Of a stretch of DNA of 64,000 nt, positions 2,069 through 40,900 are shown piece after piece (within the stretch, counting starts at the first letter, position 1; each line of letters begins with the position of its first letter). The position numbers and the translations under genes are program-made. The DNA comes from Amphiscolops sp. MND2022 (taxonomy: Eukaryota): positions 57,722,001 through 57,786,000 of the forward strand of contig OZ076412.1 in the NCBI GenBank assembly GCA_964187785.1. The letters run 5' to 3'. The notes below the pieces were generated by a model. The model saw nothing but the letters and a program-made list of their open reading frames with translations. It ran no database searches and was not told the DNA's origin.

Positions 2069-5000
2069 ATGGAAATGCCCATACGTCGTTCAACCTTCAT
2101 CACCCTTGTAAATTATTTTTTCTTGTATTTACTTATATTTATATTTTTATCAAATCTATCGAACGCAGCCACAGCTGAGAAAAATCTCCGTGCCAAACTT
2201 TTTACTGGCAACGACCGATGGGCCAGACCTGTGGCTCATGCCAAAGATGTTGTCAACGTCACCTTTGCGGCAGCCATTTACCAGGGATTATCTTGAACAC
2301 ATTTTCAGTCTTTACGGTAAACTGAAAAGGGTCTGAATGATTTTTAAAATTTTCACATTTTCATTCAGACTTCAGCTGAATAAAAAACCCAAAAAAAACG
2401 ACTCCTTCGAACACTTTTGGCACTGCAATTCTGAGTCTTTTTTGAAATCAGGTCCTTAAGATTCGAAATACAAAGAGCTTTGAGCGGTGTTTGATGTCCC
2501 CGGCTTTTGTTCTAACATCGTTTGGCATACTCTATTTTTATGCCCAAAAACACAGTAAGGTACCAAAAAATTACGAACTTCCAATTTTTTGTAGATTTCT
2601 CAATTTTTTAGCTATCAAAACTAATTTTTGTGAAAATCCATGGTCGGTGTTTGTTTCTCTAACTTTTCCTGATCCAGGCCCTCACTGTGGGTACTCTAAT
2701 GTATTAAACTTGAGTTCACCGCGCTGTTTTTTGCTGTATCAACCCTTAGTTTGATCATGATTGAAAAATTCTCCTATTTTTGTTGAAATGGTATGAAAAA
2801 CAAAGCAACACAGATAGCTCTAGCGTCCTCTGTTCCCCAACGCCAAAACAGTTAAAAAACGTTTCAAAAAAGAATTTTTCACCCTCGAACACTCGAAAAC
2901 CTAGGAATCTTGAATGACAGTTTAAATGATCAATTTTTAGCCGTTGCAAATTATCCTCAGCAAATTAGATTGAGTTACTTCTCAGCCGCTTCTGTAAGGA
3001 AACAAGGGCCTTTAAGTTGGTTTTGACAAGGTTGTCAGACCGAGCCGATGAAATTAAGAAAGTTCAATGCTAATCCTGGGAAGAATTTCTGCTAAATTCA
3101 AAAATTAACGGTAAAATTAGGTGCCATTTTGATGTTTGGAAGTAATGCAACGTTGAAGCTTTTCCAGAAAATGTACCAAAATGCATGCTACATCGAACCT
3201 TTTGTTCAAGTTTTATACATTACTTTGAACTTTTTCATAACGTAAAATCATAACCTGCGTTCGCATTGATAATGTCATAAGAAGTCAAGACAAAAACATT
3301 CCGGGTGCGCAGCGTACCTACAAAATGTACAGTAAATAGAAGAGAAAACCTTTTTTGCGTACCATAAATCACTTAAGCTTTCTCAAATGAAGAACGCAAT
3401 GCGGTCAGCGTAAATAATTCACGTAAAAAAAACAGGAAGTATCTTTTTTTGTACCCGTACTGAGATCCCATCGCAGTTCATCGATGGCCATCGCAGTCCC
3501 ATGGGGCCCATCGATGGCCATCAATGGTCCATCGATGGGCATCGATGAGGTTTTTCTAACGATGATCCCATCGATGGGAATCGAAGTTTTCCATCACAAA
3601 AATTCGTTCGACTTGGCCATGTTCAAAATTTCAACAAAACTCTGGCCATTTACGTTTTTCATTCAGTCTATTTAAACTTTGTTTGAGATTTCGAGGATGC
3701 CCAAATTATTTTATTCGGAAATGAAGTTATACATAGTGTAAGGACTACGGTCGTCTGTGTCTCTTAAATTACACGCGGACCGTGAGTCCTTTTTTGTAAT
3801 TTTAGATATAAACCCGTTAGTTCCTTCTGTATTATCCTGATTATTTGGTGACGAACCGGACTCAGTGTCCTTCTGTCCTGAAGACAGCGTACCCATAATA
3901 TTTTGTATCTCGGGGACCATTTTATCATTGATGGCAGAATTGATCGCTCTAGTTATCTGGACTTGTAGGAAGTTCATAAGTGAATCTGTCACTTGGGATA
4001 ACCTGAGATTCAATTCCTCTGATAACAGTTCCATAGACTCTAAGTGTCTATCTGACCTAGTGGTCTCAATTCTACAGCCAATGTTTCTATTCTCAATTTG
4101 CTGTGAAGGAATTTTGTAAGTAAGAATGGCCTCGGGGTCACCTCGGCCGAGAGAATGATTTAATACAATCTCGAATTTCTTTTCTATATAATTTGAATTG
4201 ATTCCACCAAGCATCATGTCCCTGTCGTTATCAATGGACATCGTGTCCATTTCTCTACAACGTCTAATTCAGTATTTTGTCTTCTTGTTGAAGAAAGTAT
4301 TTGTAGGGAAAGAAGTCAATTACTTCTTTTATGGTAAAATAAAGTGAGTTTGACAATCGGTCTCAATAATAGAGTTACAAATCAACATTGTGTCCTCGGG
4401 ACTAGGAGTCCCGAGTATTTATACTAAAATATGCATGACATACAAAATATAGGGTATCATCAATCTAATTTTAGAGCAAGTGCTCTAAAAATAGCTACAA
4501 AGGACTGCGTGTCCTTACAAACACACAATGACGTAGTTCTAAATATAGCAGCAACATGACGCAGTCAATATATATCTATATATAGTAACAGCGTCAACAA
4601 ATATCCACGTGGCCCTGAAGGCCGTCTAAATGGAACATGTTTAATAACACTACATGTAAAGCATCTTATATTAAACTGCATGTATAGCATGTGGAAATGA
4701 ATGGCAAGTAGACACAAGGGCCGTAACCTATAATAGACGACATAATACTGGCTATTCATGGGAATTAGTTTCCCGTCTGAGATAGCTTCAGAGAAGGGGG
4801 GAGGACTGAAAGTCCAGCATAATTTCGATGAATGAATTTCAACCACGAAAATGTATGTATGTATGTAGCAACAAATTGTTATAGGCCTTAAGGGCCGTAC
4901 AAAACTATTAATTGCATCTTTGTATAATATATTGCACTTTCATTTTTAAATTGGACTGGTAGTCCCACTGCCATAACACCGACAATACAAATAACTGCTA

Positions 5001-8000
5001 TACTAGATGGGAGTGTTCAGCAAGCGTACTGCGCTGTAATTGGTTAATATTTAACCGGACTAGTTGTCCACTAGCCATAAGTGAGAGGTTTATTTAGGTG
5101 GATAGGCGTGAAAGGTCTTTAAATGAAAGTTAACAGCGCTTAAAATCTAAATTGGGACTCAATTTCCAACTGCCGCAAACGTACTGGTTTATTAGTTGAC
5201 AAGCGGTGAACGGCCATCGCGTCCATTAATTAAAAGCACTAAATTAGAGCACTCATACTAATACTGCAATTTGATTGGTCTAAATTCAACCGGACTGGCT
5301 GTCCAAGACGACACAAAGGGACTCAAAACAAAATAAGATCACAGGTGGCAGCCTGCGACACTCCCCCTGGCATAAGGAGAAACGTTCCTGCTGACCCCAC
5401 ACTGACACGGTCCATGTGGTCGTCTTCATCGCTTGATAGATTACTGTGCCGTCCGACTTTGGTTATTAGGACAATAGGTCTCTCGAATGATGTCCGAAAC
5501 ACATTGCAATCCTTTTATATGCTGTAACGAGAATATTTTACATGTATAGAAGCAACAAACTATATAGCCTTCATGTCCACAACATTTTGCAACATCCATA
5601 ATACTTGTGACATGGTTACATAATAATCAGCATGAGTACAAAGGTGGTATTGGTTTATGACCATCATGTCCTTTAATACAGGTGAATGGATAAAATATCG
5701 GGTGGGGACTATTTTACTAATATCAGGGATTGGTGGACTGCCCTTGGCGTTAATGGCCAAGGGACATCAAGGACTGGTTTCAAAGCATCAATAAGCATTG
5801 ATTAAAATACATTTCAACTGCTTCATATTAGCTCAGGAATTGATAAATTAACAGCATCGCTTCAAAAAAAAAGGAAAGCCACAATGGCTGCCCGTCCTAT
5901 TATAACGTAACTAAATACTGCATGGCCTGCGTGGCCTTTAATTCTATTTACTGCGTACAATTAATAAGAGCACAGTGAATGGCGGCATGTGATTGGGTGA
6001 TTTATATTAAGGACCTGTGGTCCGCTACGCCAGGCTGTGTACATTGCATGGCCTCACTCGTCCATTTAACTTAATTGAGCAGGTACACGTATTTAATCAC
6101 AGCAACAATAATATAAAATATATAAGCGCTTCTGATTGATCAGTCTAAATTTGGACCTGTGGTCCACCACGCCAAGCCAAAAATCATTTAAACATTAATA
6201 ATACAGCGCTGGAAACAGTAGCAACATAGTTTTGTAATAATAAGGCCTTGTCGTCCAAGCACCAACTACTGCCTGGCTGTCTACGGCGTATGGCTGTACT
6301 CGGTTTTTCAGGAGATTCCGCTCACAGATTTTGATAAAATCCATAAGTTGACACGTATTTGACATCAAGTCCAAATAACTGTAAATTTGACAATAAATTG
6401 TATAGCCACGAACTCCAATTACTTTATCGACATTGTGTCAGTCTTTGTTACTTTGCCCATTTCTCCACTCAATTCAATATTTTTATTAATCATTCATATT
6501 ACTCAGAATTTAGCCAACGTCGCATTTAGTCTTCTTGTATTTGATCCACAGTCAGTCTTCTAGTCGGTTTTACTTGTGGTCTTCTTTTATATTATCTTCT
6601 TGGGACGTTCTGTGCAATCATCCTTACTCCCGTGGGTTACCTTGGGCTCGCCCCGGATAATCGACATCGAGTCCCCACTTAGCGGTTCTCTGTCAGTTCC
6701 CGTCTTATTCACCTTCTTTGGAAGAAAACACAGTCCTTTGCCTTGCTACTCTTAACTTGCCATCAGAGTGGACTCAAGGTCTCTTTGCCAACTTTCTCTT
6801 GGATTTGCGGACAACACTTTCAGCAGTGACACACAGTCAAATTGTTCTCTTCAGGAATCGCAACCAACAGTCCGAAATTTTCAATTTAGACGCAACAGCC
6901 ATCATTTTCCCAGCAGATATCCATATAGGTGTGTTGTTATGAAGGTTTTCTTTCATTAGTTTCGATTTTTGATTTTGAACTTGAAGAGGCTTGATCAAGG
7001 CCTTCATGTTGTTCAAGTAATTCCTGTCCATATAACACAAGTGTTCACTTGAGTTCGATTCTTTCTACTCCGGAGATTTTATATGCGGTAAATGGACTTT
7101 AATTAAGGAAGGTTCCCGCTTGAATTTATTTCGTTCTATTTAGACATGTCGTCTGAGAACAACTTGAAGAAAATCCAACACAACATTCTGAAAATAATGA
7201 TGTCCAGCAGTTCACTGGATTCCTGGTGACTGAAGATACTGCTGAGTCAAATAAGCGAATTGCTGAGCCAGTTTGCCGTCAAGCGGACATACTGACCCCT
7301 AGTCCATCAACTGAAGATAGTGTTAGCGCGTCATTCGGGGCTACAGAGTCTGTACAGGAAACTGAGCCAAGTTCATCTAAATCCTAAATGTACATAGTGT
7401 ACATTTGTTTCTAATTCATTTCTGTTGTATTTCAAACTGGTTTGTATTTGTTGTATTAATGTGCTTGCAGACTGTTTGTGGCTTTTATTGTATTATTCGC
7501 CACTGAGTCCATTTGTTGTTGTATTTGTCCGAAGATATAATTTGTGCATGAGAAGTCAAAAGATATAGTCAGAGCAGTCCCAAATAAAATACAAGTCCCA
7601 GTGGGCGAATAGAGAAAAGGAGACAAGCAATTTAATTTTCTGGCTAGTGATTGTATTCATGAGGATAGTTGGGGATGGGTTAGATTGAAGATTGTATTTT
7701 CTCCTCTGGGACTCGTATTTTCATCAATTTCTTCATTTTCCGATATTCCGGGCACGGTAATATCTGCGCCTCCGTTCGGAACAATTTCCGCATCGTCTAG
7801 TTCATTTGTGACGTTATATTCCTTTTCCGTCCTACTTGTCGATTTATTCGGTGGGGACGCCGCGTCACGGTTGTTGGCCGGTGTCGGCTGTATTTCATTC
7901 TCGGTGACGTCATTTTCACTCATTTTCTGGCTGCAGCGTTCATCTTCGTGTACGCTGCTGCGTTCAGTTTCAATGACGTAATGGTCCACACCGCCACTTG

Positions 8001-11000
8001 CGTCGTCGTTCAGCAGGCGTGTAGCCACGTCGGTCCAATTTTCTTTTCTCGGCTCAAATACTTTGAAATGAAAGTCTGATTCCCACAAAATTGTATACAA
8101 GTCGTTTTCTGTTCGTCGTGTAGACGTGTTCGGATCATTTTCATTATTTGTAAGTGGATAGTTTCGATAGTATTTGTAACTGGAAAAGACGTAATGTCGT
8201 TCTGACATGGGTTCATTCATTTGGAGTCGTGGCGCAGTTAGTTTTTTGAATTTGGCTTCTGAGAGATAATATGACCTGATGTGGCACTTGACTGTTTGTC
8301 ATTGATATAGGGGGACGCCTCGTCTCCTGGTCTGGGTGATGGTTTTGTTTTTGCTTTATTTCTCTTGGGGCGTAAATTCGCACCTGCGCCTTTCCAACAT
8401 TTTTCGGCTGTGTGGTTTGTTTTACTGCACGTTGGGCATTCAGGGTATGTTGGACGCTGGGGCTTTTTGTCACTTTTGTCCTCCACTTTCCGTTTCTTTT
8501 TCAGTTTTGGACAGTTTTTATAAAAATGGTTTGTCGCCTTGCAATATGCGCATTGAGCTGCTTTATTTGTGTCAAGGCTATTAGACAGCAAACTTTGAAA
8601 AATTTCAAGCATAGTAGTTTCTGGTGTGGGTGGCGTTGTGTCCATTAAGACATTATGGACCGATTCCTGTACTTCAAGGTTCGGGTCCGAGTGGATTCGT
8701 CCAGTCAGGAACTCAGGAATTGATCGCTGGGTGTCGTTAACTCCTGTCACCATGTAAGGACTACGGTCGTCTGTGTCTCTTAAATTACACGCGGACCGTG
8801 AGTCCTTTTTTGTAATTTTAGATATAAACCCGTTAGTTCCTTCTGTATTATCCTGATTATTTGGTGACGAACCGGACTCAGTGTCCTTCTGTCCTGAAGA
8901 CAGCGTACCCATAATATTTTGTATCTCGGGGACCATTTTATCATTGATGGCAGAATTGATCGCTCTAGTTATCTGGACTTGTAGGAAGTTCATAAGTGAA
9001 TCTGTCACTTGGGATAACCTGAGATTCAATTCCTCTGATAACAGTTCCATAGACTCTAAGTGTCTATCTGACCTAGTGGTCTCAATTCTACAGCCAATGT
9101 TTCTATTCTCAATTTGCTGTGAAGGAATTTTGTAAGTAAGAATGGCCTCGGGGTCACCTCGGCCGAGAGAATGATTTAATACAATCTCGAATTTCTTTTC
9201 TATATAATTTGAATTGATTCCACCAAGCATCATGTCCCTGTCGTTATCAATGGACATCGTGTCCATTTCTCTAGAACGTCTAATTCAGTATTTTGTCTTC
9301 TTGTTGAAGAAAGTATTTGTAGGGAAAGAAGTCAATTACTTCTTTTATGGTAAAATAAAGTGAGTTTGACAATCGGTCTCAATAATAGAGTTACAAATCA
9401 ACATTGTGTCCTCGGGGCTAGGAGTCCCGAGTATTTATACTAAAATATGCATGACATACAAAATATAGGGTATCATCAATCTAATTTTAGAGCAAGTGCT
9501 CTAAAAATAGCTACAAAGGACTGCGTGTCCTTACAAACACACAATGACGTAGTTCTAAATATAGCAGCAACATGACGCAGTCAATATATATCTATATATA
9601 GTAACAGCGTCAACAAATATCCACGTGGCCCTGAAGGCCGTCTAAATGGAACATGTTTAATAACACTACATGTAAAGCATCTTATATTAAACTGCATGTA
9701 TAGCATGTGGAAATGAATGGCAAGTAGACACAAGGGCCGTAACCTATAATAGACGACATAATACTGGCTATTCATGGGAATTAGTTTCCCGTCTGAGATA
9801 GCTTCAGAGAAGGGGGGAGGACTGAAAGTCCAGCATAATTTCGATGAATGAATTTCAACCACGAAAATGTATGTATGTATGTAGCAACAAATTGTTATAG
9901 GCCTTAAGGGCCGTACAAAACTATTAATTGCATCTTTGTATAATATATTGCGCTTTCATTTTTAAATTGGACTGGTAGTCCCACTGCCATAACACCGACA
10001 ATACAAATAACTGCTATACTAGATGGGAGTGTTCAGCAAGCGTACTGCGCTGTAATTGGTTAATATTTAACCGGACTAGTTGTCCACTAGCCATAAGTGA
10101 GAGGTTTATTTAGGTGGATAGGCGTGAAAGGTCTTTAAATGAAAGTTAACAGCGCTTAAAATCTAAATTGGGACTCAATGTCCAACTGCCGCAAACGTAC
10201 TGGTTTATTAGTTGACAAGCGGTGAACGGCCATCGCGTCCATTAATTAAAAGCACTAAATTAGAGCACTCATACTAATACTGCAATTTGATTGGTCTAAA
10301 TTCAACCGGACTGGCTGTCCAAGACGACACAAAGGGACTCAAAATAAAATAAGATCACATGTGGCAGCCTGCGACACATAGTTATCCATATTATTTACTT
10401 TTGCCAGGTTTTCCTTTTTTTTCAAACAATTCAAGGACAAGGCTCCGAAATAAGTGACTTTCAGGCTCGAGAAAGCTTACTCAGGCTCAACAGGAAATGA
10501 GAGTAGGTTAAAATTAGATATATTTAACCCTAAAATGCTCCACAAGTGCCCCCATGCGCTGGGCGATAATTCAAATCCCATCGATGCCCATCGGAAAAAG
10601 TTCCCCGTCGGTGGGATTGAATGGAGTCTCAGTACGGTGTACAAAAAACTGCGCCAGCCCAAAGACCCTGATTTAATCTTGAAGTTATTGAATTCTATCG
10701 CTCAACAAGCTGGTAGCAGCATAAATCGTACCTCAAAAAGCACAAACACTTCAAAGCGTCGAGCAATTTTTGAAAACTTTTCACCCTCAAAGTGCCAAAA
10801 AAACCCAAAAATTTTCTCACTGAAAACATCAAATTACCTAAGTGAAAACCCTTTTTTCAGAAAACCTTTTTTGTATAACCAAAATTATCAACAAAACCAG
10901 AGGAGGACACATTCGCCTTATTTTCAAAACCGTAGATTTTTTTGTAGATTTTGCATTTGCAAAAATATATTCACTGTGTATAAACACATTGTTAGGAGCA

Positions 11001-14000
11001 TTGTTGTGTGCTGCCTTAAAATGACCAATGTTTAATATAGATTTCACAAAATTCTTTCATTTTGGACAAAACATAACGTACAAATTTTTGCTGATATGGC
11101 AAATCTTAAATGATCATACGTTAGAAAGCCAAAACAAAGTTCTCTCAAATAGCATCAAGCTACAGGGTGATATGTGCCTTTGTCACACTGCGCAGTTAAC
11201 CTAAATAGCCACGTCTCTGAAATGTGCGAAAATAGGTGCCTCTCTTATTTTTCACACTGAATGATGACAGTGTCCACTTCCGTTTTTCCCGGTCTTCAAT
11301 TCAGAAAAAATGAGTAACAATCAAGCAACATGCATTCTGTGATAATCCTTGGTCTGGCTCAGATTGTAGACTTTGACGCCAAGGCTGAGACCCTCAGCAC
11401 ACTGATGTGGCCCCTGGTTTGCTGGCATGACATCAACATCCATTGGGACCCCACACAGAACGATGGTACTCTTAGTGGAGACAGTATTCACTATTTTTCT
11501 ATTACAAAATCTCGAATAAAATTCAACTAAAAGATGGCAAAAAGAGATACATGTGAAGTTTTTGCAAATTTGACAACGTAAACGTTCGTCAAGAAGGTAC
11601 GAAGGTTCTTTTTTTATTGTATTTTATCGTAATGATTTCGTTTTAAAAACAAGTGACAACTTTTCAAAATGAGCAGGTCTAGTTCTCTTTTGATATTTCC
11701 GAACTGGCTCTAACCATCCATCAATAACAATATCAAATTTAGAAAGTGACGCTTCCTGAATAGATTTTTCTAATAACTACAATCATACATTTGTGTTAAT
11801 ACTTGTCCAACGTCAATGGAATATTAAAATATATATTCCGGAAACACAAATACATTCGAACAAAAAATAAGTATTTTTACTCATTGTCAATTTGATAAAA
11901 TACAATATAGGTTTCTTACATCCTATGTACAGCTAGCTAGTGCGCAATTATCTCCATTGAAGATCATTTCCATTGCAACAAAAAAATTTGAGATGCTCAA
12001 AGTTTTTTCCGATAATGTATGTTCCTATAAAAACCTTTCTTGACATATGGTTTTTGTATTTGCAGGTGGTTTCAAAAAATTGTTCTCATTACAATTCAAA
12101 GACGAATCTAATAGCCCTAGGTTACAAGAGTCACAAATCTTGCAAAATTCTTCCGAAATTCTCGTCAACTTTGCATTTCTCAAAAGAATCTTACAAATTT
12201 GTACAAGAATCGCAAATTTTGCAAAATTGTTACAACGTCGAACATTTTTTACAAGATTCTGATAACATTTTTGCAAAAAATGCATTTTTTTCGTGAAATT
12301 CTTACGAAAAATGTGATGTGTTATTTCGACCAAAATTTCAAAAATCATCAAGTAGCAACAACAGCCACAGTTGCCGTTTACAATGCACAAACTGTCCCAG
12401 GATCCCAGCAAAGGGCCCAAATTGTTAATTTTGAGCTAGAAGAATTTACATGCAATTTTACCCCAAAAATTACTATGAAGTATACCAGCTATGAAACTCC
12501 GGACAAAAATTCCGAGAACTCTTCTGCTAATGATGATAGGAATATGAACATGGTACCAAATGAAAATACATTTCAAGGGATTTACAAGGGTTCTAACGCA
12601 AACCTGCTGTCATCTGCTGTGATGGAGAAAATCAGTACAAAGACGAAACCACCTGAGCAATGTCATATTGAAAACTGTAAAAACCCTGAAAATTGTAGCA
12701 AAATCAACCATCGTTTTCATTTCTTCTCCAGCCCATTTCAGCTAGTCAGGAGACTGTTGAGAATGGAAGATATTGCTCCCTTAGGGGCAATGACACCACG
12801 CTAGGGCTGTAATGTTGTAAGCGAAAGCTTTACAACAATAACATCAAAAAATGCTCATGATACAAATAAGGCATTCCGATAATTTAAGATCTAGATGCTC
12901 TAATATGGGCAATTGTATCATTTTTCGCTTACAGATCGTTTTCTTTTGCAGCCGTTTAATTTTTTGAGGCAGGAAATGCAAAAAAATGTCAGATTTATGC
13001 ATTTTTTGTAACATTCTGAGAGCAGAAATATGCAAATCTTGCAAGATTTTTGCAAGAGTTAGATTCAAAAATTGCATTTTCTTACAAGATCTTACAAGAA
13101 TTCTTGTAAGAATTTTGCAAGAGTTGTGATTTTTGTAACTCAGGGAGACTACGGGCTGTTGTTCGTCACTCATTTCAAAGATGAAAAAGTGATTTGTTGT
13201 TTAAAAAATGCTTTGATAGAGTCTCGTTTGTAGTTATTTCTCACAAATTTATCACAAAAAAGGCTCAAGTAGCTTTATAGTCAATCAAATGTCGGTCAGC
13301 CGTTCAATTCAAGAACTCAATACCAGTAATGAGCGGATCTGTATCAGTTTTAGTTTGACCAAAATTTATAATGCATTTAAACGCGTCCTGTTGAACAATG
13401 GGCCAATTTCACCTCAAACTTTAATGTAGCACAAAACAGCCGACTTGAACGAAATACGAAAAAGTGAGGCTTAGCCCCCAAATCAGGAGTTGAAATATTC
13501 GGTATAGCACAATACACAATGTTGCATTTTCTTTCAAACATTGCTACATTATTTGCGTATTTAATTTTTTCCTTAGTGCTTATTAGTTTTGATCAATACA
13601 CGCACTTGATGCGTAAAGAAACGGTCGACTGTTTTGTACTGTATTCAAAATCGCATATTTTGTTCCGTTTTGAAAATTGTCCCGCTCTCCTTAATCACTG
13701 TTTTAAAAAAGATAAATCGTTTGCAACATTATAAACTTGCATGCAATCTCTCTAGGTGTTGACGTCATCAGAATAAACCAGAATGAAATCTGGATACCTG
13801 ACTTGATTCCCTACAATGATGTGGGTAGCTGGGACACAGAGAAGTACAAAAACCTGATCCCTTTGTTTGCCAGACACGATGGCAAAGTTTGCTGGATGTT
13901 CCCAACTATCATGGAGACCATCTGCACAATGGACGTGTATGATTTTCCCTACGACATGCAAAGGTGTCAGGTCAGAGACCGGTCATGACTAAGTGACGTC

Positions 14001-16999
14001 ACACTGAAAATTTATGCCAAAATTGAGTTATTTGATTTTAAAAATACTTGATTTGTGTAGCTTGGGTTTTTTTAAATAAATTCAAAGCAGTAAATTAAAT
14101 TTGAAGCGGGAATTTTCCACAAAACATAGAAAAATTTTTGAACAAAATCAGACAATCTCGAAAGATGTAAAATACGTCTCTGCCTTTTATGACATGCCAT
14201 AACAGCGCTCTCAACTAAAAAATCAGAGTTGTCACAAGAAAGCATAAATTCTAAAGCAATTATTTTTTGCATTTTTCGAAATCCATTTCAAAAGCAAATG
14301 AATCGAAGTCGATTTGTTTTTCTAATTAGTTTTATCGAAAAATAACACTGTTTCATGAACAATGTCCGGACTTTTTGTCGATGGTTTTCAGGTGCAACTG
14401 GGATCTTGGCAGTACAGCACGGCTGAAGTCCAAACCAGGTGTCTCCACCATGATCTCGACATGAGTGCCTTCACACCAAACTCACACTGGCAACTCACAA
14501 GTAGGAACACTTTTTCATTTCCGGCCTCAATTACAAAGACTTACAAAAAGCATGACCAGACTTTTCAGTCCACCAAAAGATACATTAATATTAAATTTAA
14601 AATAGTGACAATAGAGACAACGAAAAAGAAAAATGAGAGTTCTGGTATGATTCACATGTTAATATAGTCGCCTTGTTTCTCGAATATTTTGACTAATCGA
14701 GAATCTACCGACGACGTCAATTTTTTGATAAATTTTGGGGTAATTCAAGCATGCGCCTGCTTGATGGCGCTCCAGAGGTCATATTGGCACGAACACTGCT
14801 TGCATTCTGCGAAAACTTTGCATTTTATGATTGACCACATATTTTCTATTGGATACGTTGGGTAAAAAACCAGCTTCTAAAAAAATGGCAGCACTCGTGG
14901 AAATTTTCATTGTTTTCATTACAATTCTAAGTCGTCAAAATGATCGGTCACTATATGATTTTATTTTTCCAAGACGGTTGTTCTGGCGCACTTTTTAAAA
15001 ACTCACGTAAAAGTGTCGAAACACTCAAAGGGTACCTTTCGTGCTCAGAAAACGCCTGAAACGTTCAGATATAACTGGGAGTGCTTTTTCCGAACATTGG
15101 TTTCGTCAAAACTGGGATATAACGTGAAAACTTGGATATAGCGCACTAATTTTGATCCTCTGCTTTCTCTTTAGCAAAGTGCAATATACTTTGGATATAA
15201 CGTCAAAAGAGTGTCTTCGGATATGTCTTCGGATATAGTGTGCTGAAATAAATGGCTCAGCTTCCTCATTGGTAAAACGCAATATAGTTCGGAATACGTC
15301 ACAAATTCGGATTTAGCACAATATTTTTGAACCTCCACCTTGTCTTTAGTGAAACGCAATTTTCTTCGTATAAACGTCAAAAATTCGGATGGTATTTAAA
15401 AATATTATCGGTGGATATACACGTGGAGAAAACCTAATATCAGACGGAACATGAGAGTTTCGAAGAGTCTCATAGTGCCGAAATGGGGGCCCTTTGGTGT
15501 TTTTTAAAAATCTATTCCGTTGCAAAATGTCCCAAAAATTGAAAGGGGGACCTTCTGGAGACTTTCAAAAATATTCCAATAGAGTCTCTGTGCCAGACCC
15601 TTTAGTCCTCGTTCGGTTTTGTATGTTACGTTTGAAAAGGAAAAATAAAAAGGGACCCTTCGAACTAACTTAGATGCGTTTCCGCTGGCTGGAATTGGCT
15701 GGTCCATTAGTTTAGTAGTTTTAGTAGTTTCTATAAAAAGTGTCCACTATGCGTACATTGATATCTGACGAAAAAAAACCTGAAATACACCGACTAAAGA
15801 AACTAGGCACTGTAACAGTTGCGTTCATTTTCTACTTAAATGATTATATGTAACAAAAAACCAAAGCGTCACCGTTTACCAAGTTTTGCTTTATTTAGGT
15901 TGTCTTCGACAACTTTTGGTGGAATTTGAAAGAATCACTCTCTTGTCATGAGACGTGAATAAGGAATTTTGACGTGCTAATTCAATGGTCCCCCTTTGGA
16001 ATATTTTATAGTCAGGAACAAAAATAGTTTTACAAGCCTGAAGCGCTTGGAGATTCTTAAACTGATGAATTTTTTCTCCGCAACTGTTTCTGTGCATGTT
16101 TTTAAGATTTCATTCATTGTGAGATCGAAGCAGGCGCCGACTTAAGCCAATCTCACTTATTTCCAATTGATTTCAATATATGTTGCTTCTTGATAAAAAC
16201 AGTAATGTATATTAATAACCTACATAAGTTGCAGCACCGAATATCAAATCTAAATAGCACTTTCGAAGTTTGTTTGTAAACAACTTCCTATCACGAACGT
16301 CTGTTGTTGTTTGGTCGGCGGTGATATGACAGTATGAAACTTTCATTTTTGAGATTGTGAGGCCAAGTCTGTTTAGGGTCGACTTGTGAAGAAAAAGAAG
16401 AGCTGTACTTTGACAGCAGGAAGTACAGTTTCGTTTACTTGAACATCGATTTACAAAGAATGGACAAGTTCTACGTTCAGAACCTCATCCTTCCAACTGG
16501 GATCCTCCTAGCTCTCAGCAGTCTCATATTTTTCCTGCCCTCGGAACTTTCAGACAGAATCGGATATGGGATAACTGTGACGTTGGCTCTTTGTGTTAAC
16601 CTCGTCATTGTGATCGACTTCATTCCCGAAACTTCTAGAACTATTCCCTCACTTTGCACTTACTTTTTAGTCAGTATTTGTCTCTCGGGATTCTCAATTC
16701 TTCTCTCAGCTGTTTCTCTAAACATGGCGTCATCACAAAATCAAAGCGAAGCGAACATCGTCAGCTTAAAACCAATTGAAGCGCATGAGAACGAATTGAA
16801 TGGCGACCAATGTAACGCGATATCTATTCCTTCTCGTTCAGCCAATGAGAGAACAAGCAGTCGCTCCAAACTTGGAAAACTTCTTCAGCACGTTGTACCG
16901 AAGCGAGTTCAAGACCCAATGAAATTTCTGGACAGAGCTGCCGGTTCAATTTACTTCGTGGCCACGACTTTGTACACAATCTACTTTTTGTGGAAGTAA
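2069..16999 (+). CDS. Cys-loop ligand-gated ion channel subunit (nAChR/5-HT3-like, non-alpha), 421 aa; exons 2069-2284, 11363-11465, 13756-13970, 14392-14500, 16377-16999
   Basis: Exons join in frame (1266 nt). Signal peptide, RPV motif, WxD (WHD), IWIPDL, Cys-loop CTMDVYDFPYDMQRC (C-x13-C), GSWQY, M1-M3 with DRIGYGITVTL and a C-terminal M4. Intron 1 needs a GG donor. Confidence 0.93.
3737..5360 (-). repeat. 3' LTR (1624 bp)
   Basis: Direct repeat of 8753-10376, preceded on the minus strand by the PPT. Confidence 0.95.
3777..6256. repeat. Array of GG(A/C)C-N5-G(T/G)CC dyads
   Basis: GGAC-N5-GTCC at 3777, 3858, 4236, 4399, 4502, 4803, 4953, 5057, 5292, 6011, 6153. GGCC variants at 4611, 4884, 5212, 5924, 6244. 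One-mismatch copies at 4710, 5155, 5469. Mirrored in the 5' LTR at +5016. Confidence 0.92.
7657..8220 (-). pseudogene. Low-complexity ORF downstream of gag, possibly the post-integrase tail of a deleted pol
   Basis: 187-aa acidic, N/T/E-rich ORF immediately after gag. No catalytic motifs. Confidence 0.4.
8238..9266 (-). CDS. Gag-like protein (342 aa) with two CCHC zinc knuckles; its first 514 nt lie inside the 5' LTR
   Basis: CAYCKATNHFYKNC and CPTCSKTNHTAEKC (CX2CX4HX4C). The ORF crosses the LTR/PBS junction at SPY-M-VTG. Confidence 0.88.
   Translation of the reverse strand: MDTMSIDNDRDMMLGGINSNYIEKKFEIVLNHSLGRGDPEAILTYKIPSQQIENRNIGCRIETTRSDRHLESMELLSEELNLRLSQVTDSLMNFLQVQITRAINSAINDKMVPEIQNIMGTLSSGQKDTESGSSPNNQDNTEGTNGFISKITKKDSRSACNLRDTDDRSPYMVTGVNDTQRSIPEFLTGRIHSDPNLEVQESVHNVLMDTTPPTPETTMLEIFQSLLSNSLDTNKAAQCAYCKATNHFYKNCPKLKKKRKVEDKSDKKPQRPTYPECPTCSKTNHTAEKCWKGAGANLRPKRNKAKTKPSPRPGDEASPYINDKQSSATSGHIISQKPNSKN
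8753..10376 (-). repeat. 5' LTR (1624 bp)
   Basis: Direct repeat of 3737-5360, followed on the minus strand by the PBS. Confidence 0.95.
12116..13146. mobile_element. Foldback/MITE-like element with long diverged terminal inverted repeats
   Basis: GGTTACAAGAGTCACAAATCTTGCAAAATTCTT at about 12120 mirrors AAGAATTTTGCAAGAGTTGTGATTTTTGTAAC at about 13108-13140. Arms of roughly 190 bp built from CTTGCAAGA-like subrepeats. No clear TSD. Confidence 0.6.
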
Positions 17000-18639: not shown

Positions 18640-21600
18640 TGTGTCATTCAGATGACTCATAATTTGATTGAATCAACTCATGCATCAAAAAGTCATGAAC
18701 AACCAATGAAACTATTGATTTGATTGGCATTTTGGAAGGATTTTTACTTGTTGCAGTGTGATTAGTTAACTTTTCGATGATTCATTAATCGCGGTAAATA
18801 GAAATTCAGAATTGTGTAACAACCCAATTATTGTTCAGATTTGAGAACAAAAAAGACTTTCGACAAATACCTGCAGCTTCTTCCCCAAGACGTTTTCCCC
18901 ATAGGCGGAACATTCAAATCACAGCATCATGGAAAAAACAGCAAGGGCGTTATCCCTCAGAAATTTCAAAAAAGCATGTATAAGGTATGAGAACTTCTTG
19001 TTAACTTTGATCCCGATTTTGAAAAGCACCAACCAAGAGATGTTCCAAGATGTGTCAAAAACATGGTTCAATGTCCAAAGTGCACATGAACGTTACATGT
19101 TAACAGTTAGTGATGATACATATGAAGCTGAAATTTTGTGGATAGACGAACCTGAATCCAATGAATTAAGATCGAAAAAATGCCAATTCGACAAGACTTT
19201 AAAGGAAAAGACATTGTCTCTAGAAAAAACGAACTTTGAAGAAAATGCTAAAAGAGTTGCCGAAAAGGAGGTAGATTTGAAATGGAATGAGCTTAGAGAA
19301 AGATGTCGCAAATTGAACGACAGATACAATATCGAACTGAATAGACTCAGCAACATTTGCCAATCTTCCGAAAACATTTCAGCGCCGAACGATAAAACTT
19401 TGAAAGCAGTAAAAGGCGACTTTCAAAAACAACTTAAAGAAAATACGGAGCTATCTGAGGCTCTTGCGGAAATAAAAGATTCGGGTGAACTAGAAAAATT
19501 GAACTGAAATGTTTTTACAAAAATCTCTAACAAATTTGATGTTATCTTCTACCAAGCGTCGAATTCTCTTCCGTGCCAAAGTGAGTGCGGTGGGGAGATG
19601 CAGTAGATGCAAAACGAGTGCTAACGCACATGGAAAAAAAATGAAATTTCCCAAGTTTAGCGGTAACTGTAGAGATTGGCCACAGTTCAAAAAAGACTTC
19701 GAAAAACAAGTTTCTTCTGTCATCGTGGATGAGTCAACTGTCTCATATGCCTTACGAAACGCGTTGACTGACAATGCGAAAAGTTTGGTCCGTAATATGA
19801 ACGACAATATCAAAGAAATGTGGACACGGTTAGATGAGAGGTATGACGATGAAGGCAAGATTGTAGAAATTGTTCTCAATGATATTAAACATTTCCGACC
19901 GATAAAAGAAAATGAAGAAAGGCGTCTCCTGGCTTTTATTTACATCATAGAGAAAGCAACTATGGAATTGAAATATCTAGGGCGGGAGCCTGAAATAAAA
20001 AACAGTACAATTATTTCAATAATTGAAGAAAAATTGCCTGACGACTTGAGAACAAAATGGATCGAAAGAATTTACGAGAAAGATAGTGCAATTGACAAAG
20101 GCGATAAGTTTCCCGGTTTTCTAAAATTTTTGTTGGAGAGGTAAATGGTAGTTGAGTATGACTTGAGTTTGTTGAAACGAAATAAAGAAGAAGTAAAGGC
20201 TAATGTTCCACTGAACCTGGTAGGAGATAGTGGACAAAAGCCAGCAACTCCAAAATGTTTTTTGCATCCTGGATCAGAACATCGGACAGATGAATGCAGA
20301 TTATTCCTGGACAAATCTGTTCGCGAGCGATCGAATCTAGTAAAAGGAAGAAGAGCGTGTTTTAATTGTCTCAATATTGGGCCCACATCACGAATATGTA
20401 AAAGCAGGAAGCAATGCCAGCAAAAGGAATGCGGGAGGAACCATCACACACTCTTGCATGATAGTCAATTTCAAAGAGCAACCCAACAGACTAACCTGTT
20501 TCCCTGCGAAGTGTATCATAGCAGGGGAAACGTGTTTGTTTGCAAATCATGCCAATAGAGATTATCACTCCTACCCAGTCGAAGAATATTCTTTCTCTTT
20601 GGGACTCAGCTTCTACAGTGTCTTTAATTTTGATCTCAGTCGCAAACACCTTGAAAATTCCAGGCAAAGCTGTTTCTATTGTGATGGAAACACTCGGCCA
20701 AACAAAAAGAAAGCAAACAAAACTGTTCAAAGTCAATATAGGAGATCGAGACGACAATCTCGTTCTCGTTGAAGCGTATGGTGTTGATCTAATATCGACT
20801 GAGGAATACAGTACAGAACCTCATCGAACAATTTTTCCGACGGAGTTTCAGAATCATCAGGACAAAAGGGAATTTATTTCAATACTTTTGGGTTTGAACG
20901 TTGTACAGTATCACCCTGTACCAGTAAAATGTTGTGGAAATTTTGTCTTGTTTGAAAATGCATTGAAAATGCTGACACTAAAAGAAATTGAAGAGGCATG
21001 GAATTTCATAGTCAAACACGAGCAGAAAGAACTTCAACAAAGTTTTGAAAGCGGAAAATTTGAACGTTTAGGTGCTTTTAAAAACGAGAAAGGTTTGATT
21101 ATGGCTGGCCGGAGGATCAATGAAGTTGTGCCATTATTACCAAAATCATCAAAATTTGTGAAGCTGGCAAAAAAAGAAGCACACCAACCTGGTCACCTAG
21201 GAGAATTAGCAACTGCAACAAAGTTCGTACGAAACTTTGGTCACCGAACCTGCTAAGAATTATAAAATCTGTTTTAAAGTTTTGCACTAGATGTAGACTT
21301 TACAACAAGGAAAGAGCTTCGCAACTTATGGGTTCTTCAACTGAGGAGCGACTAAATCCATCGTTGCCGTTTACTAACCTATGTATTGATTTGTTCGGAC
21401 CATACAACGTGAGGAGCAATTTGAAAAAGACTTCGCATTGTAAAATTTATGCGGCCATTTTCACTTGCCTTTTTTCTCGAGCAGTACATTTGGATATAGT
21501 AATGGATTACTCGAAAAAGGAGTTCCTGCAAACCTTCAGGAGATTTGTTTCACTTCGCGGATTTCCTGAAGTCATTCATTCTGACTCAGGCACTCAACTA

Positions 21601-22648
21601 GTTAGTGCCAACAAAGCACTTCAAGGCAGCTTCAAGATTATGAATGATGATTTCCTCTTTAAGGAATTAAACTTTAAAGGATTGCGGTGGGAATTTGCAC
21701 CCGGCTGTGCTCCATGGCGGCAAGCTTGCGCTGAACCGCTTATCAGCTCAGTAAAAAAATGCTTGTTTTTTGCTATTGGAAATCAAGTCCTATCGTTGAT
21801 GGAAATGCAAACAATATTGTTCGAGGTTGCAAACCTGATTGATCGACCCATTGGAAGACATCCGACTCACGCTGATGATGGGTTCTACTTGTCTCCCAAT
21901 TCTTTGCTACTCGGTCGTACTCAAAACCCAACTGTGCCGTTTCCAACAAACAATGGATATAATTTGACCCTTCAGAACCTAGTAGAAAATGATTTAGACA
22001 GCTTTTGGAAGAAATGGTAAAGAAATTTTTTGCCACAGATGTGTTTCTACTAAAAATAGCGTTAAACTCACAGGAACTTTGAAAAGGATGATGTAGTGTT
22101 AGTGGAAGATCAAAATACAATTAGACGTATTGGAAGTTAGGAAGGAGTCGAGACGTATATCCTGGACGCGATGGATTAGTGAGAGATGTTGAAGTTGAAA
22201 TTGTCGCAAAGAATGGAGTCAAGACTTGTTTGTCCAGGCCAACTTGTGTTGTTTCTTCCTAAAGACGAACAATGATTAACTGGAAAACATTAAACTTGAT
22301 ACGTTGAAGTTGATGAGTTAATTAAACTGTCAAACTGTCCACAGGAATTTGCTCAATCAGGCGATGTGGCGGGAGTGTGTCATTCAGATGACTCATAATT
22401 TGATTGAATCAACTCATACATCAAAAAGTCATGAACAACCAATGAAACTACTGATTTGATTGCCATTTTGGAAGGGTTTTTACTTGTTGCAGTGTGGTTA
22501 GTTAACTTTTCAATGATTCATTAATCGCGGTAAATAGAAAATCAGAATTTTGTAACAAATCAAATGTTGTTCAGATTTGAGAACAAAAAAGACTTTTGAC
22601 AAATACCTGCAGCTTATTCCCCAAGACGTTTTCCCCATAGGCGGAACA
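18640..22648 (+). mobile_element. Bel/Pao LTR retrotransposon, frameshifted, with RT/RNase H deleted
   Basis: 273-bp LTRs at 18640-18912 and 22376-22648 (TG...CA, about 14 differences), TSD ATAAA, PPT GTGGCGGGAG. Gag PKFSGNCRDWPQF (DUF1759-like), zinc knuckles CFLHPGSEHRTDEC and CFNCLNIGPTSRIC, protease LWDSAST, integrase IDLFGP...HSDSGTQL...QACAE. Confidence 0.93.
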
Positions 22649-37970: not shown

Positions 37971-40900
37971 ATGAGCTTGAAAAGAGAAGTATTCGCTCTT
38001 TTGGAAAGTGGAGAGGCTGTAGAAATTTTCACTTTGACTACCGAGTCAATCAGCGTTTCTCTTATCACTTTTGGTGCCTGCATAACTAATTTTGAGTTGC
38101 TTTCAAAGAATTTAGACGTCGCGCTCGCTTACCGATCTGAAGCTTTAGATGGATATGTTGAAAATCCATACAAAGTTGGTGCAACAGTCGGAAGAGTTGC
38201 TAATCGAATCCGGAATGGACAGTTTCAAGTGGACGGTAAAACTTATAAAGTCGATAAAAATTTACAAGGAAAACACTCACATCACGGTGGGCATAAATGT
38301 TTCTCACACTACAATTGGAAAGTAAAAGAGGATGCTTTGACCGACAATTCTGTGACTTTCTTTCACATCAGCCCTGATGGTGATATGGGATACCCTGGCG
38401 AAGTGAACATTGAAGCTACGTATTCAGTGAGAGTAAGTATTCAGTGGTATATCCAAGTTATATACATGACATTCCTAAGGAGAACTTTCCATTGTTGCAT
38501 ATTATATCAAACTTTGAATCACGAATCTCATACCTTTGCTTGTTTCATTTTCGTTCTAATTGTTGTTTAAGAATTAACATCCGAAGCACCAACGAGCCAC
38601 AAAACGTATCTTCAAGTCAGGACTCGTTAACGAGCGAAGTCGATGACCTCGACAATGCTAATCCAGATCCACAACTTCGAACCAGATACGTCCTTGAGTA
38701 AATTTCGTAAAGAACCACAACTGTTTGATGAGTTGAGTACATTGATAAGTCCTCCTACGGCGACGCCCCGAGCAGGTCGACAAAAAAACCAGCACCCTCT
38801 GAGCGTCACTCTCAGTCGCATCCTCGATGCCCCATCCTCAGTTCACTGAATTTCGTAACATTGCAAGCGCTAAGTCATAATTTCCAAAAATTTTGAGCAT
38901 TCCCGGATGTGAACGACTGATAGCAAGTCAAACAGCGACGGTGGTACCTTTGTCGCCTCAGACAACTCGCTTCCTACCACAGCCGATCAGAAGATCTACA
39001 AAATCTCAGGAGCTCATAACTCCCCATTTTTGAAGAAATTACCGGTCGGAAAATTACTTCACAAGGTTCCTCACTGGAGCTCCCTTTCGGCTCTTGCAAC
39101 TCCCTTACGGATGACCTTTCAAAAGGATACTTGTTTTCCTGCCGTAACAAAAGCTTTGGTATGCTATTTCAAAACGCCTTTTCTGGCGACTACGCTCTGA
39201 AGCTATACTTTCGCCTCAAAAACTTCATGCAAAAGCAGTTCGGGAACACTTTATTCTCCGCCTCCTTTCTCCCTCTGTCTCTTGGAGCAACGGGGTCAAT
39301 CAGAAGGCATTTGCCGCTTCAGCCTCGCCTTGAAAGAGGCATATCGGCTGGAAAAGTCTCCAAAATCTGGCGTTTACTTGCATGAAATCGGTGATGAAAT
39401 CAACGTTGAGCACTGGTTCACAGTTAAACATCCCATACTCTGTAGAATATACTGCTTGACATAGGAAGGCTTTACCTTGGAGACAGCTGTTTTGCCCATG
39501 CACATACCTTAGGCTCTCCCTCCGTCGGAGTATTGCCAAAACAGAATGTCCAAGCCAAGGTACATTGCCATCCCTAACATCTACGGATGACATTGAAATT
39601 GTAACATCAAGATTTGTTTGCACATGTGAGCAAATAGTGTCACACTAATGCTACTTCCTAACTCATTTCATCCCATTACAAATTTCAAATTCGTTGGGTT
39701 CATACTGCACCTCTTTCCTGCAAAGCTCATGACACGTCCAGCTGCTTTACGGAGCTGTTTACAGTCAGTTTTGGGACGAGTACGATCTGAAAAAAAAATA
39801 TTCAAACTTCGCTTCAACAGTACAAATTACTTTTTTTAAGTCTACCAATGCGCAACCAGGTACCGACCTGACTTCTTACACACACGATGATAGTATGATA
39901 GTATATTGTGGAGAAGAGACAATCCACTGCGACCACAGCATTGTCAGACTTCACTTCACTTGAATGTCCATAGGTTGACAGGCCACTATTACGCCTTCTC
40001 TACTTTCAAACCCGGTCATTAATTTGAACGTAGAATCAAGTTATTGGCACCACCTTTTTCTTTGTGCAGCGGGAAGCCAGTAAATTTCTGTGAATGAAGG
40101 CGATCATCCTTTTCCCAAAAGCACTCGGGAGATCCGCGCAAAAACCTCAACACATGTAGAATTAACTTTTGTTCACGTCCTTTAAAAACAAGGTACAAGA
40201 ACTAACTCTTTAATAGCGATGTCGCATCCGCCTGTAACCTCGAGGAGGACGTATCCCTCATCCATAGTGCTTTCCGCATCTGTGTTTTGTTTAATATATG
40301 CTCGCCCTGTTCGTTGATTTGTTCCATCCTTGAAACCATCAACTTTTCCGAGGAAATACAAGGAGCCATCGTTTTTAGATTGATTTAGGTGGAGCCTGTT
40401 CTTGAGATTGACGTATTTTTGAAAATCTTTTCTGAAAGGCTTCCAACAATTCGCCTCGCGATTAATTAAAAGGCTTGCGATCTATTCCTTTTAATAGCAG
40501 TCAAAATTTTAACCAACAGTTTCTGCCTTAAACGCTCAAGTGTTTGTTTGCAAATCAGACCAGGGGGTCCCCTGGTTTTCTCTGGGCACGTGGAAAAAGA
40601 ATTAAGTCTATTTTAAGCCTAAAATAATGGGTTCCAAACGTCTCCCTTTCCAATCTTTGACATCTCTAACCATCTCTCTATCCTCCTTGTTTTTTTTTCG
40701 GTCGGCACTGTGTGACTTTTATTTTGCTTCAGTGGAGAGTATGGTCTCCCTTTTTGTTTTGATGTTTTGAATTATTATAACGTGTTTTTCGAGTCCAGGG
40801 GTTTTTAGAGCCTTTTATGGTTATTTCGCCACGCTGTGACTTCGAATCAAAAATATTCACTAAAAGAAGTTATTCATTATTACCTCCGATTTTTTTAGTC

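Follow-up and report, generated by a model that had tools for sequence, protein, structure and literature searches.

What keeps one short palindrome, always with a centre of five nucleotides (nt), in place along a retrotransposon and in most of its relatives? The question is raised by a 64,000-nt stretch of the Amphiscolops sp. MND2022 genome (assembly GCA_964187785.1, contig OZ076412.1, positions 57,722,001 to 57,786,000), hereafter the window, in which a 6.6-kb long terminal repeat (LTR) element named NA1 carries a dense array of the dyad GGMC-N5-GKCC (M, A or C; K, G or T). On double-stranded DNA, these dyads are probably bound by a sequence-specific protein that acts as a homodimer with two-fold symmetry. 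Each subunit of the predicted dimer would read one GGMC half-site, and because the half-site starts are 9 bp apart, both subunits would sit on one face of the helix. We infer protein binding, the dimeric state and an effect on transcription or chromatin from the sequence patterns described below.

Repeated factor sites are ordinary in LTRs. Here, one strict palindrome marks a whole diversified retrotransposon lineage, and it is kept, at fixed landmarks and in coding sequence, while the LTR sequence surrounding it is replaced. The 13-bp palindrome is also a sharply defined probe for the predicted factor behind a very abundant family.

A dyad of fixed spacing

The window contains 30 matches to GGMC-N5-GKCC, compared with a mean of 0.88 and a maximum of 4 in dinucleotide-preserving shuffles of the same 64 kb. 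All but two of them (28 of 30) lie inside NA1, with 16 between 3777 and 6256 and 12 between 8793 and 10320, in the twin LTR. A first-pass annotation of the window had listed sixteen exact dyads in the former block, eleven of the form GGAC..GTCC and five with GGCC half-sites (4611, 4884, 5212, 5924 and 6244), and a recount returns identical coordinates. The recurrence every 57-109 bp that it described from 4399 to 5292 holds if the one-mismatch sites at 4710 and 5155 are included. Its tally of three one-mismatch copies is too low: ten are counted in 3700-6400, several of which are probably due to chance.

The spacing between half-sites is strict. A scan of the element with spacers of 0 to 12 yields 28 sites at N5 and either none or one at each other length. 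For GGAC and GTCC alone, in inverted order, there are 37 sites at N5 versus at most three at any other spacing from 0 to 12. GGAC with N5 ranks first in a de novo count of all inverted 4-mers with spacers of 2-9, and among the GC-containing inverted 4-mers, GGAC and GGCC at N5 are the sole standouts. Everted and direct arrangements of the half-sites show no enrichment. The earlier statement that no exact copy exists outside the element is correct for the strict GGAC type and fails for the GGCC type: two similar dyads of the latter kind are found at 30686 and 32575 (GGCCCAAAGGGCC and GGCCCAAGGGGCC). They are 1.9 kb apart and may belong to another repeat.

Spread through a retrotransposon lineage

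The motif is not peculiar to the LTR in the window; it spans a whole gypsy lineage, coding regions included. The NA1 Gag has relatives in the 560-amino-acid (aa) Gags of 15.5-16 kb Ty3/gypsy elements, and the autonomous partner has RVT_1, RNase H and rve domains. In the autonomous families, Gag starts inside an LTR of ~1.6 kb, and a multi-exon gene on the opposite strand lies between pol and the 3′ LTR. Open reading frames (ORFs) of this antisense gene are seen in every autonomous copy examined. A sister subfamily of NA1, NA2, has an intact 336-aa Gag, and the ratio of nonsynonymous to synonymous divergence (dN/dS) between the two is 0.52, with dS at 0.215.

Ten families were read in all (NA1, NA2, NA3, AU1, AU2, L031, F56, F57, F58 and F59), and the motif fills nine of them, AU2 being the exception. 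When the ten are pooled, with each LTR counted once, 107 kb contain 111 N5 sites against ~8 expected from local half-site counts, and 1-12 sites at other spacings. Control DNA of the same genome that belongs to none of the families, taken from the flanks of family loci, has 4 sites in 104 kb. The autonomous family AU1 carries 21 N5 sites in 15.5 kb, with 5 in each LTR and 11 in gag, pol, the antisense gene and the 3′ region; NA2 carries 25. Four families reached via their divergent antisense proteins (F56, F57, F58 and F59) have 14, 20, 19 and 17 N5 sites per locus, respectively, and no more than three at any other spacing, at identities to AU1 that fall to 52% in Gag and to 33% in the antisense exons. 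The U3 regions of the motif-bearing families are mostly unalignable with one another.

Zero dyads are present in an unrelated short-LTR gypsy element, and zero in a relative with 41% Gag identity, of which gag and several kb upstream were read. A 5-kb contig from a different sample (L060, ERZ1742291) encodes a Gag 37% identical to that of AU1, without pol downstream, and has three N5 and two N6 dyads with just one at any other spacing; from this contig, the motif may extend beyond the present genome.

A second dyad class, GGCCG-N4-CGGCC (equivalent to GGCC-N6-GGCC), is also enriched in the pooled families, with 29 occurrences at N6 versus ~5 at other spacings. It is located at 13928 and 14075 in L031, at 7650 and 7848 of the AU2 element, and at 7286, 7316 and 7460 on the reverse strand of L057/L058, and further copies are found in the internal regions of NA2 and NA3. 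Two N6 sites ~150-200 bp apart occupy the 3′ end of pol in L031, AU2 and F58, and one does so in F57. In the U3 of AU2, the N6 form (330, 483 and 681) stands in place of the N5 form.

The window element and its landmarks

NA1 is inserted on the minus strand, with LTRs at 3737-5360 and 8753-10376 that are each 1624 bp long, 99.63% identical and bounded by TG..CA. Its features, in window coordinates, are as follows.

3732-3736: left copy of the target-site duplication CATAG, the same 5 bp being present at both ends of the element
3737-5360, minus strand: 3′ LTR, 1624 bp, with 12 exact dyads, from LTR alignment and motif count
3777-3870: dyads at 3777-3789 and 3858-3870, both within U5 where the LTR codes for Gag; the position of the LTR-end one is shared with NA2, AU2, F57 and F58
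4236-4248: dyad over the Gag start codon, ATG-GAC-N5-GTCC on the minus strand; its working copy is at 9252-9264 in the 5′ LTR
4399-4411: TATA-proximal dyad, within a perfect 21-bp palindrome (4399-4419); its twin at 9415-9427 is broken by a change at 9417
4416-4423, minus strand: TATAAATA box, 4 nt upstream of the dyad, an arrangement also present in NA2, F57 and F58
4399-5304: U3 array of nine exact dyads plus the one-mismatch sites 4710 and 5155, several of them in GGCNGNN-dyad-AATTTAGA-CCAAT modules
5361-5370, minus strand: polypurine tract (PPT; ..CCAGGGGGAG on the minus strand), adjoining the 3′ LTR
5924-6256: internal 3′ untranslated stretch preceding the PPT, with four dyads whose modules are of the U3 type
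6956-7156, plus strand: what is left (200 bp) of an antisense-gene exon of the partner, with 80% identity to AU1
7657-8220, minus strand: 187-aa ORF from the 3′ end of pol (integrase C-terminus)
8238-9266, minus strand: truncated Gag ORF of 342 aa with two CCHC knuckles; ~222 central residues of the partner Gag are missing
8741-8752, minus strand: primer-binding site (PBS) TGGTGACAGGAG, starting with TGG, adjoining the 5′ LTR and translated in frame as part of Gag
8753-10376, minus strand: 5′ LTR, with 12 exact dyads (8793-10320)
10377-10381: right copy of the target-site duplication CATAG

Read on the minus strand, the PPT ends in GGGGGAG. Gag starts 514 nt inside the 5′ LTR and its reading frame crosses the PBS (..SPY-MVTGV..), and the partner families are built alike. 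NA1 and AU1 align collinearly over the end of the LTR, the two termini of Gag, the 3′ end of pol (730 nt), a piece of antisense exon (200 nt) and the PPT. A Pfam search of the element finds no domains and thus no reverse transcriptase (RT), RNase H or integrase. By these comparisons, the window element arose by deletion from a 15.5-kb Ty3/gypsy family and is non-autonomous, in agreement with its earlier description as an RT-less parasite of an autonomous partner. The family is abundant and young, with at least 40 LTR copies at 96-100% identity in the 1.07-Gb genome. The retained pol 3′ end (7376-8108) and antisense exon (6956-7156) may hold further cis-acting sequence.

The two LTRs differ at exactly 6 of 1624 positions, 2 of which fall within motif cores; about six differences, two of them in motifs, had been reported. 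At the first, 4401 is A and 9417 is G, which turns GGAC into GGGC in the twin LTR. At the second, 5164 is T and 10180 is G, so that a broken half-site, TTCC, faces an intact GTCC. Since both differences break a core, the inserting copy had 10 strict GGAC..GTCC sites per LTR, the number that the first-pass annotation had derived. The change at 9417, one of only six LTR differences, hits the TATA-proximal dyad of the working promoter, which is the one in the 5′ LTR.

Several dyads occupy fixed landmarks across the lineage. The order TATAAATA, 4 nt, dyad is kept in NA1, NA2, F57 and F58 despite different dyad centres, and the TATA-proximal dyad likely lies between the TATA box and the transcription start. 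The Gag-start dyad (..gagaaATG-GAC-N5-GTCC) is present in NA1, NA2, AU1 and F57, and L031 has the Gag-start 13-mer of AU1 at the aligned position; at the Gag start of AU2, the Asp codon is GAT and the dyad is gone. A third landmark, ~40 nt before the LTR end and within Asp-Ser-Arg-Ser codons, is found in NA1, NA2, AU2, F57 and F58. In the U3 regions of NA1 and NA2, about half of the sites are embedded in related modules composed of GGCNGNN, the dyad, AATTTAGA and a CCAAT box that either overlaps the dyad or lies 26 nt downstream. With ~14 non-coding sites per element in NA1 and ~4 in AU1, the parasitic derivative has, by this comparison, multiplied the motif about threefold.

Elsewhere in the window, a further LTR element, free of dyads, survives as a remnant at 18929-22020 (plus strand), where a DUF1759 Gag and an integrase core are recognizable. 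Host-gene exons at 16439-16999 and 37971-38570 encode a ligand-gated ion-channel transmembrane region and an aldose 1-epimerase domain, respectively.

DNA site or RNA stem

An inverted repeat with a short centre can be read as a duplex DNA site or as a hairpin, and the first-pass annotation had offered both: sites for a dimeric DNA-binding protein, or RNA hairpins read by the Gag of the element. The bases of the half-sites bear directly on this choice. Across 81 distinct 13-mers, the third and eleventh bases are A/T in 44, C/T in 15, A/G in 13 and C/G in 9, which is close to independence. Mixed half-sites make up 35% of these distinct sites, and, folded into a 4-bp stem, each would have A facing G or C facing U at the third pair. 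Mixed sites stay mixed in both NA1 and NA2. One orthologous site has changed from A to C on one side alone, and a comparison of the half-sites found no compensatory changes. The bases that flank the core are complementary at 27-38% of sites, and the symmetry never goes beyond 4 bp. Single-base variants follow no G-U wobble pattern; C4 and G10 are invariant, and the outermost bases are the loosest. The centre of the site is strand-symmetric (p = 0.19 and 0.31) and essentially free. In overlapping GGAC-N5-GGCC-N5-GTCC triplets, the self-complementary GGCC is shared by both dyads. A choice of A or C that is mirrored by T or G keeps the central amino/keto pattern of the major groove. Half-sites that are independent, unextended and wobble-free fit the signature of a symmetric dimer on double-stranded DNA.

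The alternative that survives best, which we nonetheless consider unlikely, is that the transcript is what is recognized. The genomic RNA would carry a series of hairpins with 4-bp stems and 5-nt loops, recognized by Gag or its zinc-knuckle nucleocapsid when the RNA is packaged, exported or stabilized, and the hairpins multiplied in the 3′ untranslated region (UTR) of the RT-less element would compete for the particles of its partner. Every site does lie in the full-length transcript, where the array runs unbroken over the PPT/U3 border and forms one continuous 3′ UTR, and the coding regions of the partner have scattered sites. Gag is conserved among the motif-sharing families, the zinc knuckles of the non-autonomous element are under some constraint (the dN/dS of 0.52 given above), and isolated 17-mers fold at about -5 kcal/mol. 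These points are set against the mismatch at one of four pairs in more than a third of distinct sites, conserved as such, against the one-sided substitution with zero compensation, and against a stem that neither extends nor tolerates wobble. A fixed stem with a free loop is moreover the reverse of known protein-binding RNA hairpins, and a search of Rfam at a permissive threshold returns no match. Of the two earlier proposals, the first is thus favoured by the independent half-sites, the lack of stem extension or wobble and the TATA-proximal site, and the second is disfavoured.

Selection and turnover

The cores outlast their surroundings between subfamilies. From NA1 to NA2, 11 of 16 sites are retained, against a null rate of 0.35 (p = 0.006), and from NA2 to NA1, 11 of 14 are retained, against 0.28 (p = 0.0001), the null in each case being all 13-mers of the same alignment under the same mask. 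The five central bases of the retained sites are 76% identical. On this comparison, the eight core bases are under purifying selection between subfamilies while the centres drift. Some sites are private to one subfamily, and the sites therefore turn over around a roughly constant number.

Within the family, a different pattern is seen. Among 35 LTR sequences, with core columns set by the per-column majority state of the alignment, singleton variants occur at 0.177 per site in the cores versus 0.138 elsewhere. Variants shared by at least two LTRs, which predate insertion, occur at 0.052 in the cores versus 0.102 elsewhere, a difference that is not significant (p = 0.15). Cores thus decay like their surroundings after insertion.

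These data bear on the possibility that the array is the relic of a decayed tandem repeat or of duplicated filler, devoid of present function, of which the dyad is merely the best-kept part. The related GGCNGNN-dyad-AATTTAGA-CCAAT modules, to which roughly one in two non-coding sites of NA1 and NA2 belongs, indicate that the array grew by duplication, and the post-insertion decay is what such a relic would display. Tandem Repeats Finder, however, detects no array in 3777-6256, and a direct-repeat search reveals no family besides the LTRs, the flanks of the dyads sharing a weak likeness at most. Between subfamilies, cores persist beyond the neutral rate as centres and flanks drift; the same eight bases recur at non-homologous places, coding sequence included, in elements whose LTRs are mostly unalignable; and the spacing is strict at every site. 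A relic is therefore largely refuted and highly improbable, in accordance with the earlier view that the motif is not a plain tandem-repeat relic.

Equally hard to credit is a purely structural role, in which the dyads form DNA hairpins or cruciforms (in single-stranded cDNA during reverse transcription, say, or as signals for pausing or strand transfer) and no sequence-specific protein is involved: palindromic sites do run all along the element, one of them ~40 nt upstream of the PBS, but a signal of structure alone would leave the stem sequence free and other 4-mers admissible, would exclude mixed sites with their mismatches and would not confine the stem to 4 bp.

How the dyads may work

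If the dyads are sites for a dimeric protein on double-stranded DNA, they constitute a lineage-wide cis-element. Each LTR has 4-6 sites, among them those between the TATA box and the start, at the Gag ATG and near the LTR end. A few more occur from the antisense gene to the 3′ LTR, and gag, pol and that gene itself contain further scattered sites. In the RT-less element, units of a dyad plus CCAAT have been multiplied in U3 and in the 3′ untranslated stretch next to it; most likely, the element thereby attracts more of this factor, which would drive its transcription or protect it.

Five observations weigh against this interpretation. Sites in coding regions and upstream of the PPT are needless for a classical U3 enhancer. 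All sites are contained within the genomic RNA, so their position allows a role in RNA. The sites in the pol gene of AU1 are mostly absent from sister families, and coding sites therefore come and go. AU2 has the antisense gene and yet only 3 N5 sites versus 11 N6 sites of the form GGCCG-N4-CGGCC. Lastly, pooled counts taken before deduplication exhibit a weak excess of matched half-sites (about p = 0.02), which disappears once duplicates are removed.

A tentative candidate for the binder is the zinc-finger protein of the antisense gene, which would act as a dimer reading GGMC-N5-GKCC. The protein has ~400 hypervariable N-terminal residues and also a 126-aa block, 60-85% identical in seven families, that bears a CxxC-x16-H-x5-H signature. 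This block alone is strongly conserved, the rest of the protein evolving fast. A model of this block predicts a β-hairpin followed by a helix, at a predicted local distance difference test score (pLDDT) of 54, too poor for a fold search. Pfam returns zinc-finger matches for the block, all of them sub-threshold, and a sequence search of the PDB identifies no solved relative. Every family rich in N5 sites is either a member of the antisense-gene lineage or a derivative of it, a tie that could equally reflect shared ancestry. The finger block of AU2, the N6 user, has 5 private changes versus 7 in the more distant F59, and so no signal emerges from this comparison. A literature search on antisense genes in gypsy elements found nothing relevant. 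L057 and L058 have Gags that are 99.5% identical and antisense-gene exons that are 38% identical, a contrast suggesting that elements exchange this gene as a module.

Were the binder self-encoded, the antisense dimer would activate, insulate or mark the DNA of the element, and non-autonomous elements would have dropped the gene, multiplied the sites and come to capture the protein in trans. This would supply a reason for the odd antisense gene and a new kind of retrotransposon self-regulation, built on dispersed sites, for which papillomavirus E2 and its targets offer a parallel. It is likewise possible, and no firmer a proposition, that the binder is a host factor, in which case the 1-Gb genome has probably been seeded by this family with many copies of the site for that factor.

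Comparison with known systems

The signature had been taken to be undescribed for LTR families, and a literature search for the motif bears this out, with no eukaryotic description found. To our knowledge, the motif matches no transcription-factor consensus. Several candidate sites were set aside. NFI (TGGC-N5-GCCA) does not fit in half-site register. The p53 quarter-sites and the steroid-receptor IR3 elements require A..T as central bases, which the dyad does not have. The Mad/Medea silencer element is not palindromic.

The sole match to GGACN5GTCC in the literature is the operator predicted for a mycoplasma restriction-modification controller protein, a dimeric helix-turn-helix protein; this operator variant was itself untested experimentally in that paper (PMC5282649). 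The mycoplasma operators resemble the present sites in having a form that suits a symmetric dimer, but they are bacterial and unrelated by descent.

Among retroviruses and retrotransposons, the hormone-response elements of the mouse mammary tumour virus (MMTV) LTR, the 72/75-bp repeats of murine leukaemia virus (MLV) and the heat-shock elements of ONSEN likewise comprise several short, partly palindromic sites in U3 upstream of the TATA box. Such U3 clusters also grow by module duplication and turn over between subfamilies. Unlike them, the present motif also occurs outside U3, namely in gag, pol, the antisense gene and the 3′ internal region, and is kept across mostly unalignable LTRs. The Su(Hw) array of Drosophila gypsy, an insulator of 12 sites in the 5′ untranslated region, is similar in its dense sites for one protein and its unrelated spacers. 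Its sites are asymmetric and 12 bp long, lie between PBS and gag and are bound by a multi-finger monomer, whereas those described here are palindromic and are distributed over U3, the 3′ UTR and scattered positions. An insulator array of the Su(Hw) type was rejected as an identity for the present one, because Gag reads through the PBS and leaves no such 5′ untranslated region, and because the site is palindromic.

As a non-autonomous element, NA1 is comparable to ETn/MusD, Dasheng/RIRE2, BARE-2 and large retrotransposon derivatives (LARDs), which have lost RT, RNase H and integrase, keep LTRs, PBS, PPT and some sequence of their partners, and are abundant and young. In contrast to these, NA1 retains a shortened, mildly constrained Gag and has multiplied one cis-motif about threefold.

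An accessory gene combined with repeated U3 or internal elements is also seen with foamy virus Tas, the human T-lymphotropic virus type 1 (HTLV-1) Tax 21-bp repeats, and HBZ, the spliced antisense gene of that virus; the accessory gene of the present lineage is antisense and spliced too. The Tas and Tax response elements are not strict palindromes. The closest match in possible working is papillomavirus E2, which reads ACC-N6-GGT as a dimer. There, E2 is virus-encoded and a known binder; here, the link to the antisense gene is a hypothesis, and sequence and host are unrelated. Both systems nevertheless have short, fixed half-sites on either side of a free-sequence spacer of strict length, and in both the sites are numerous in the control region and present in part elsewhere; here too, the predicted reader is a dimer.

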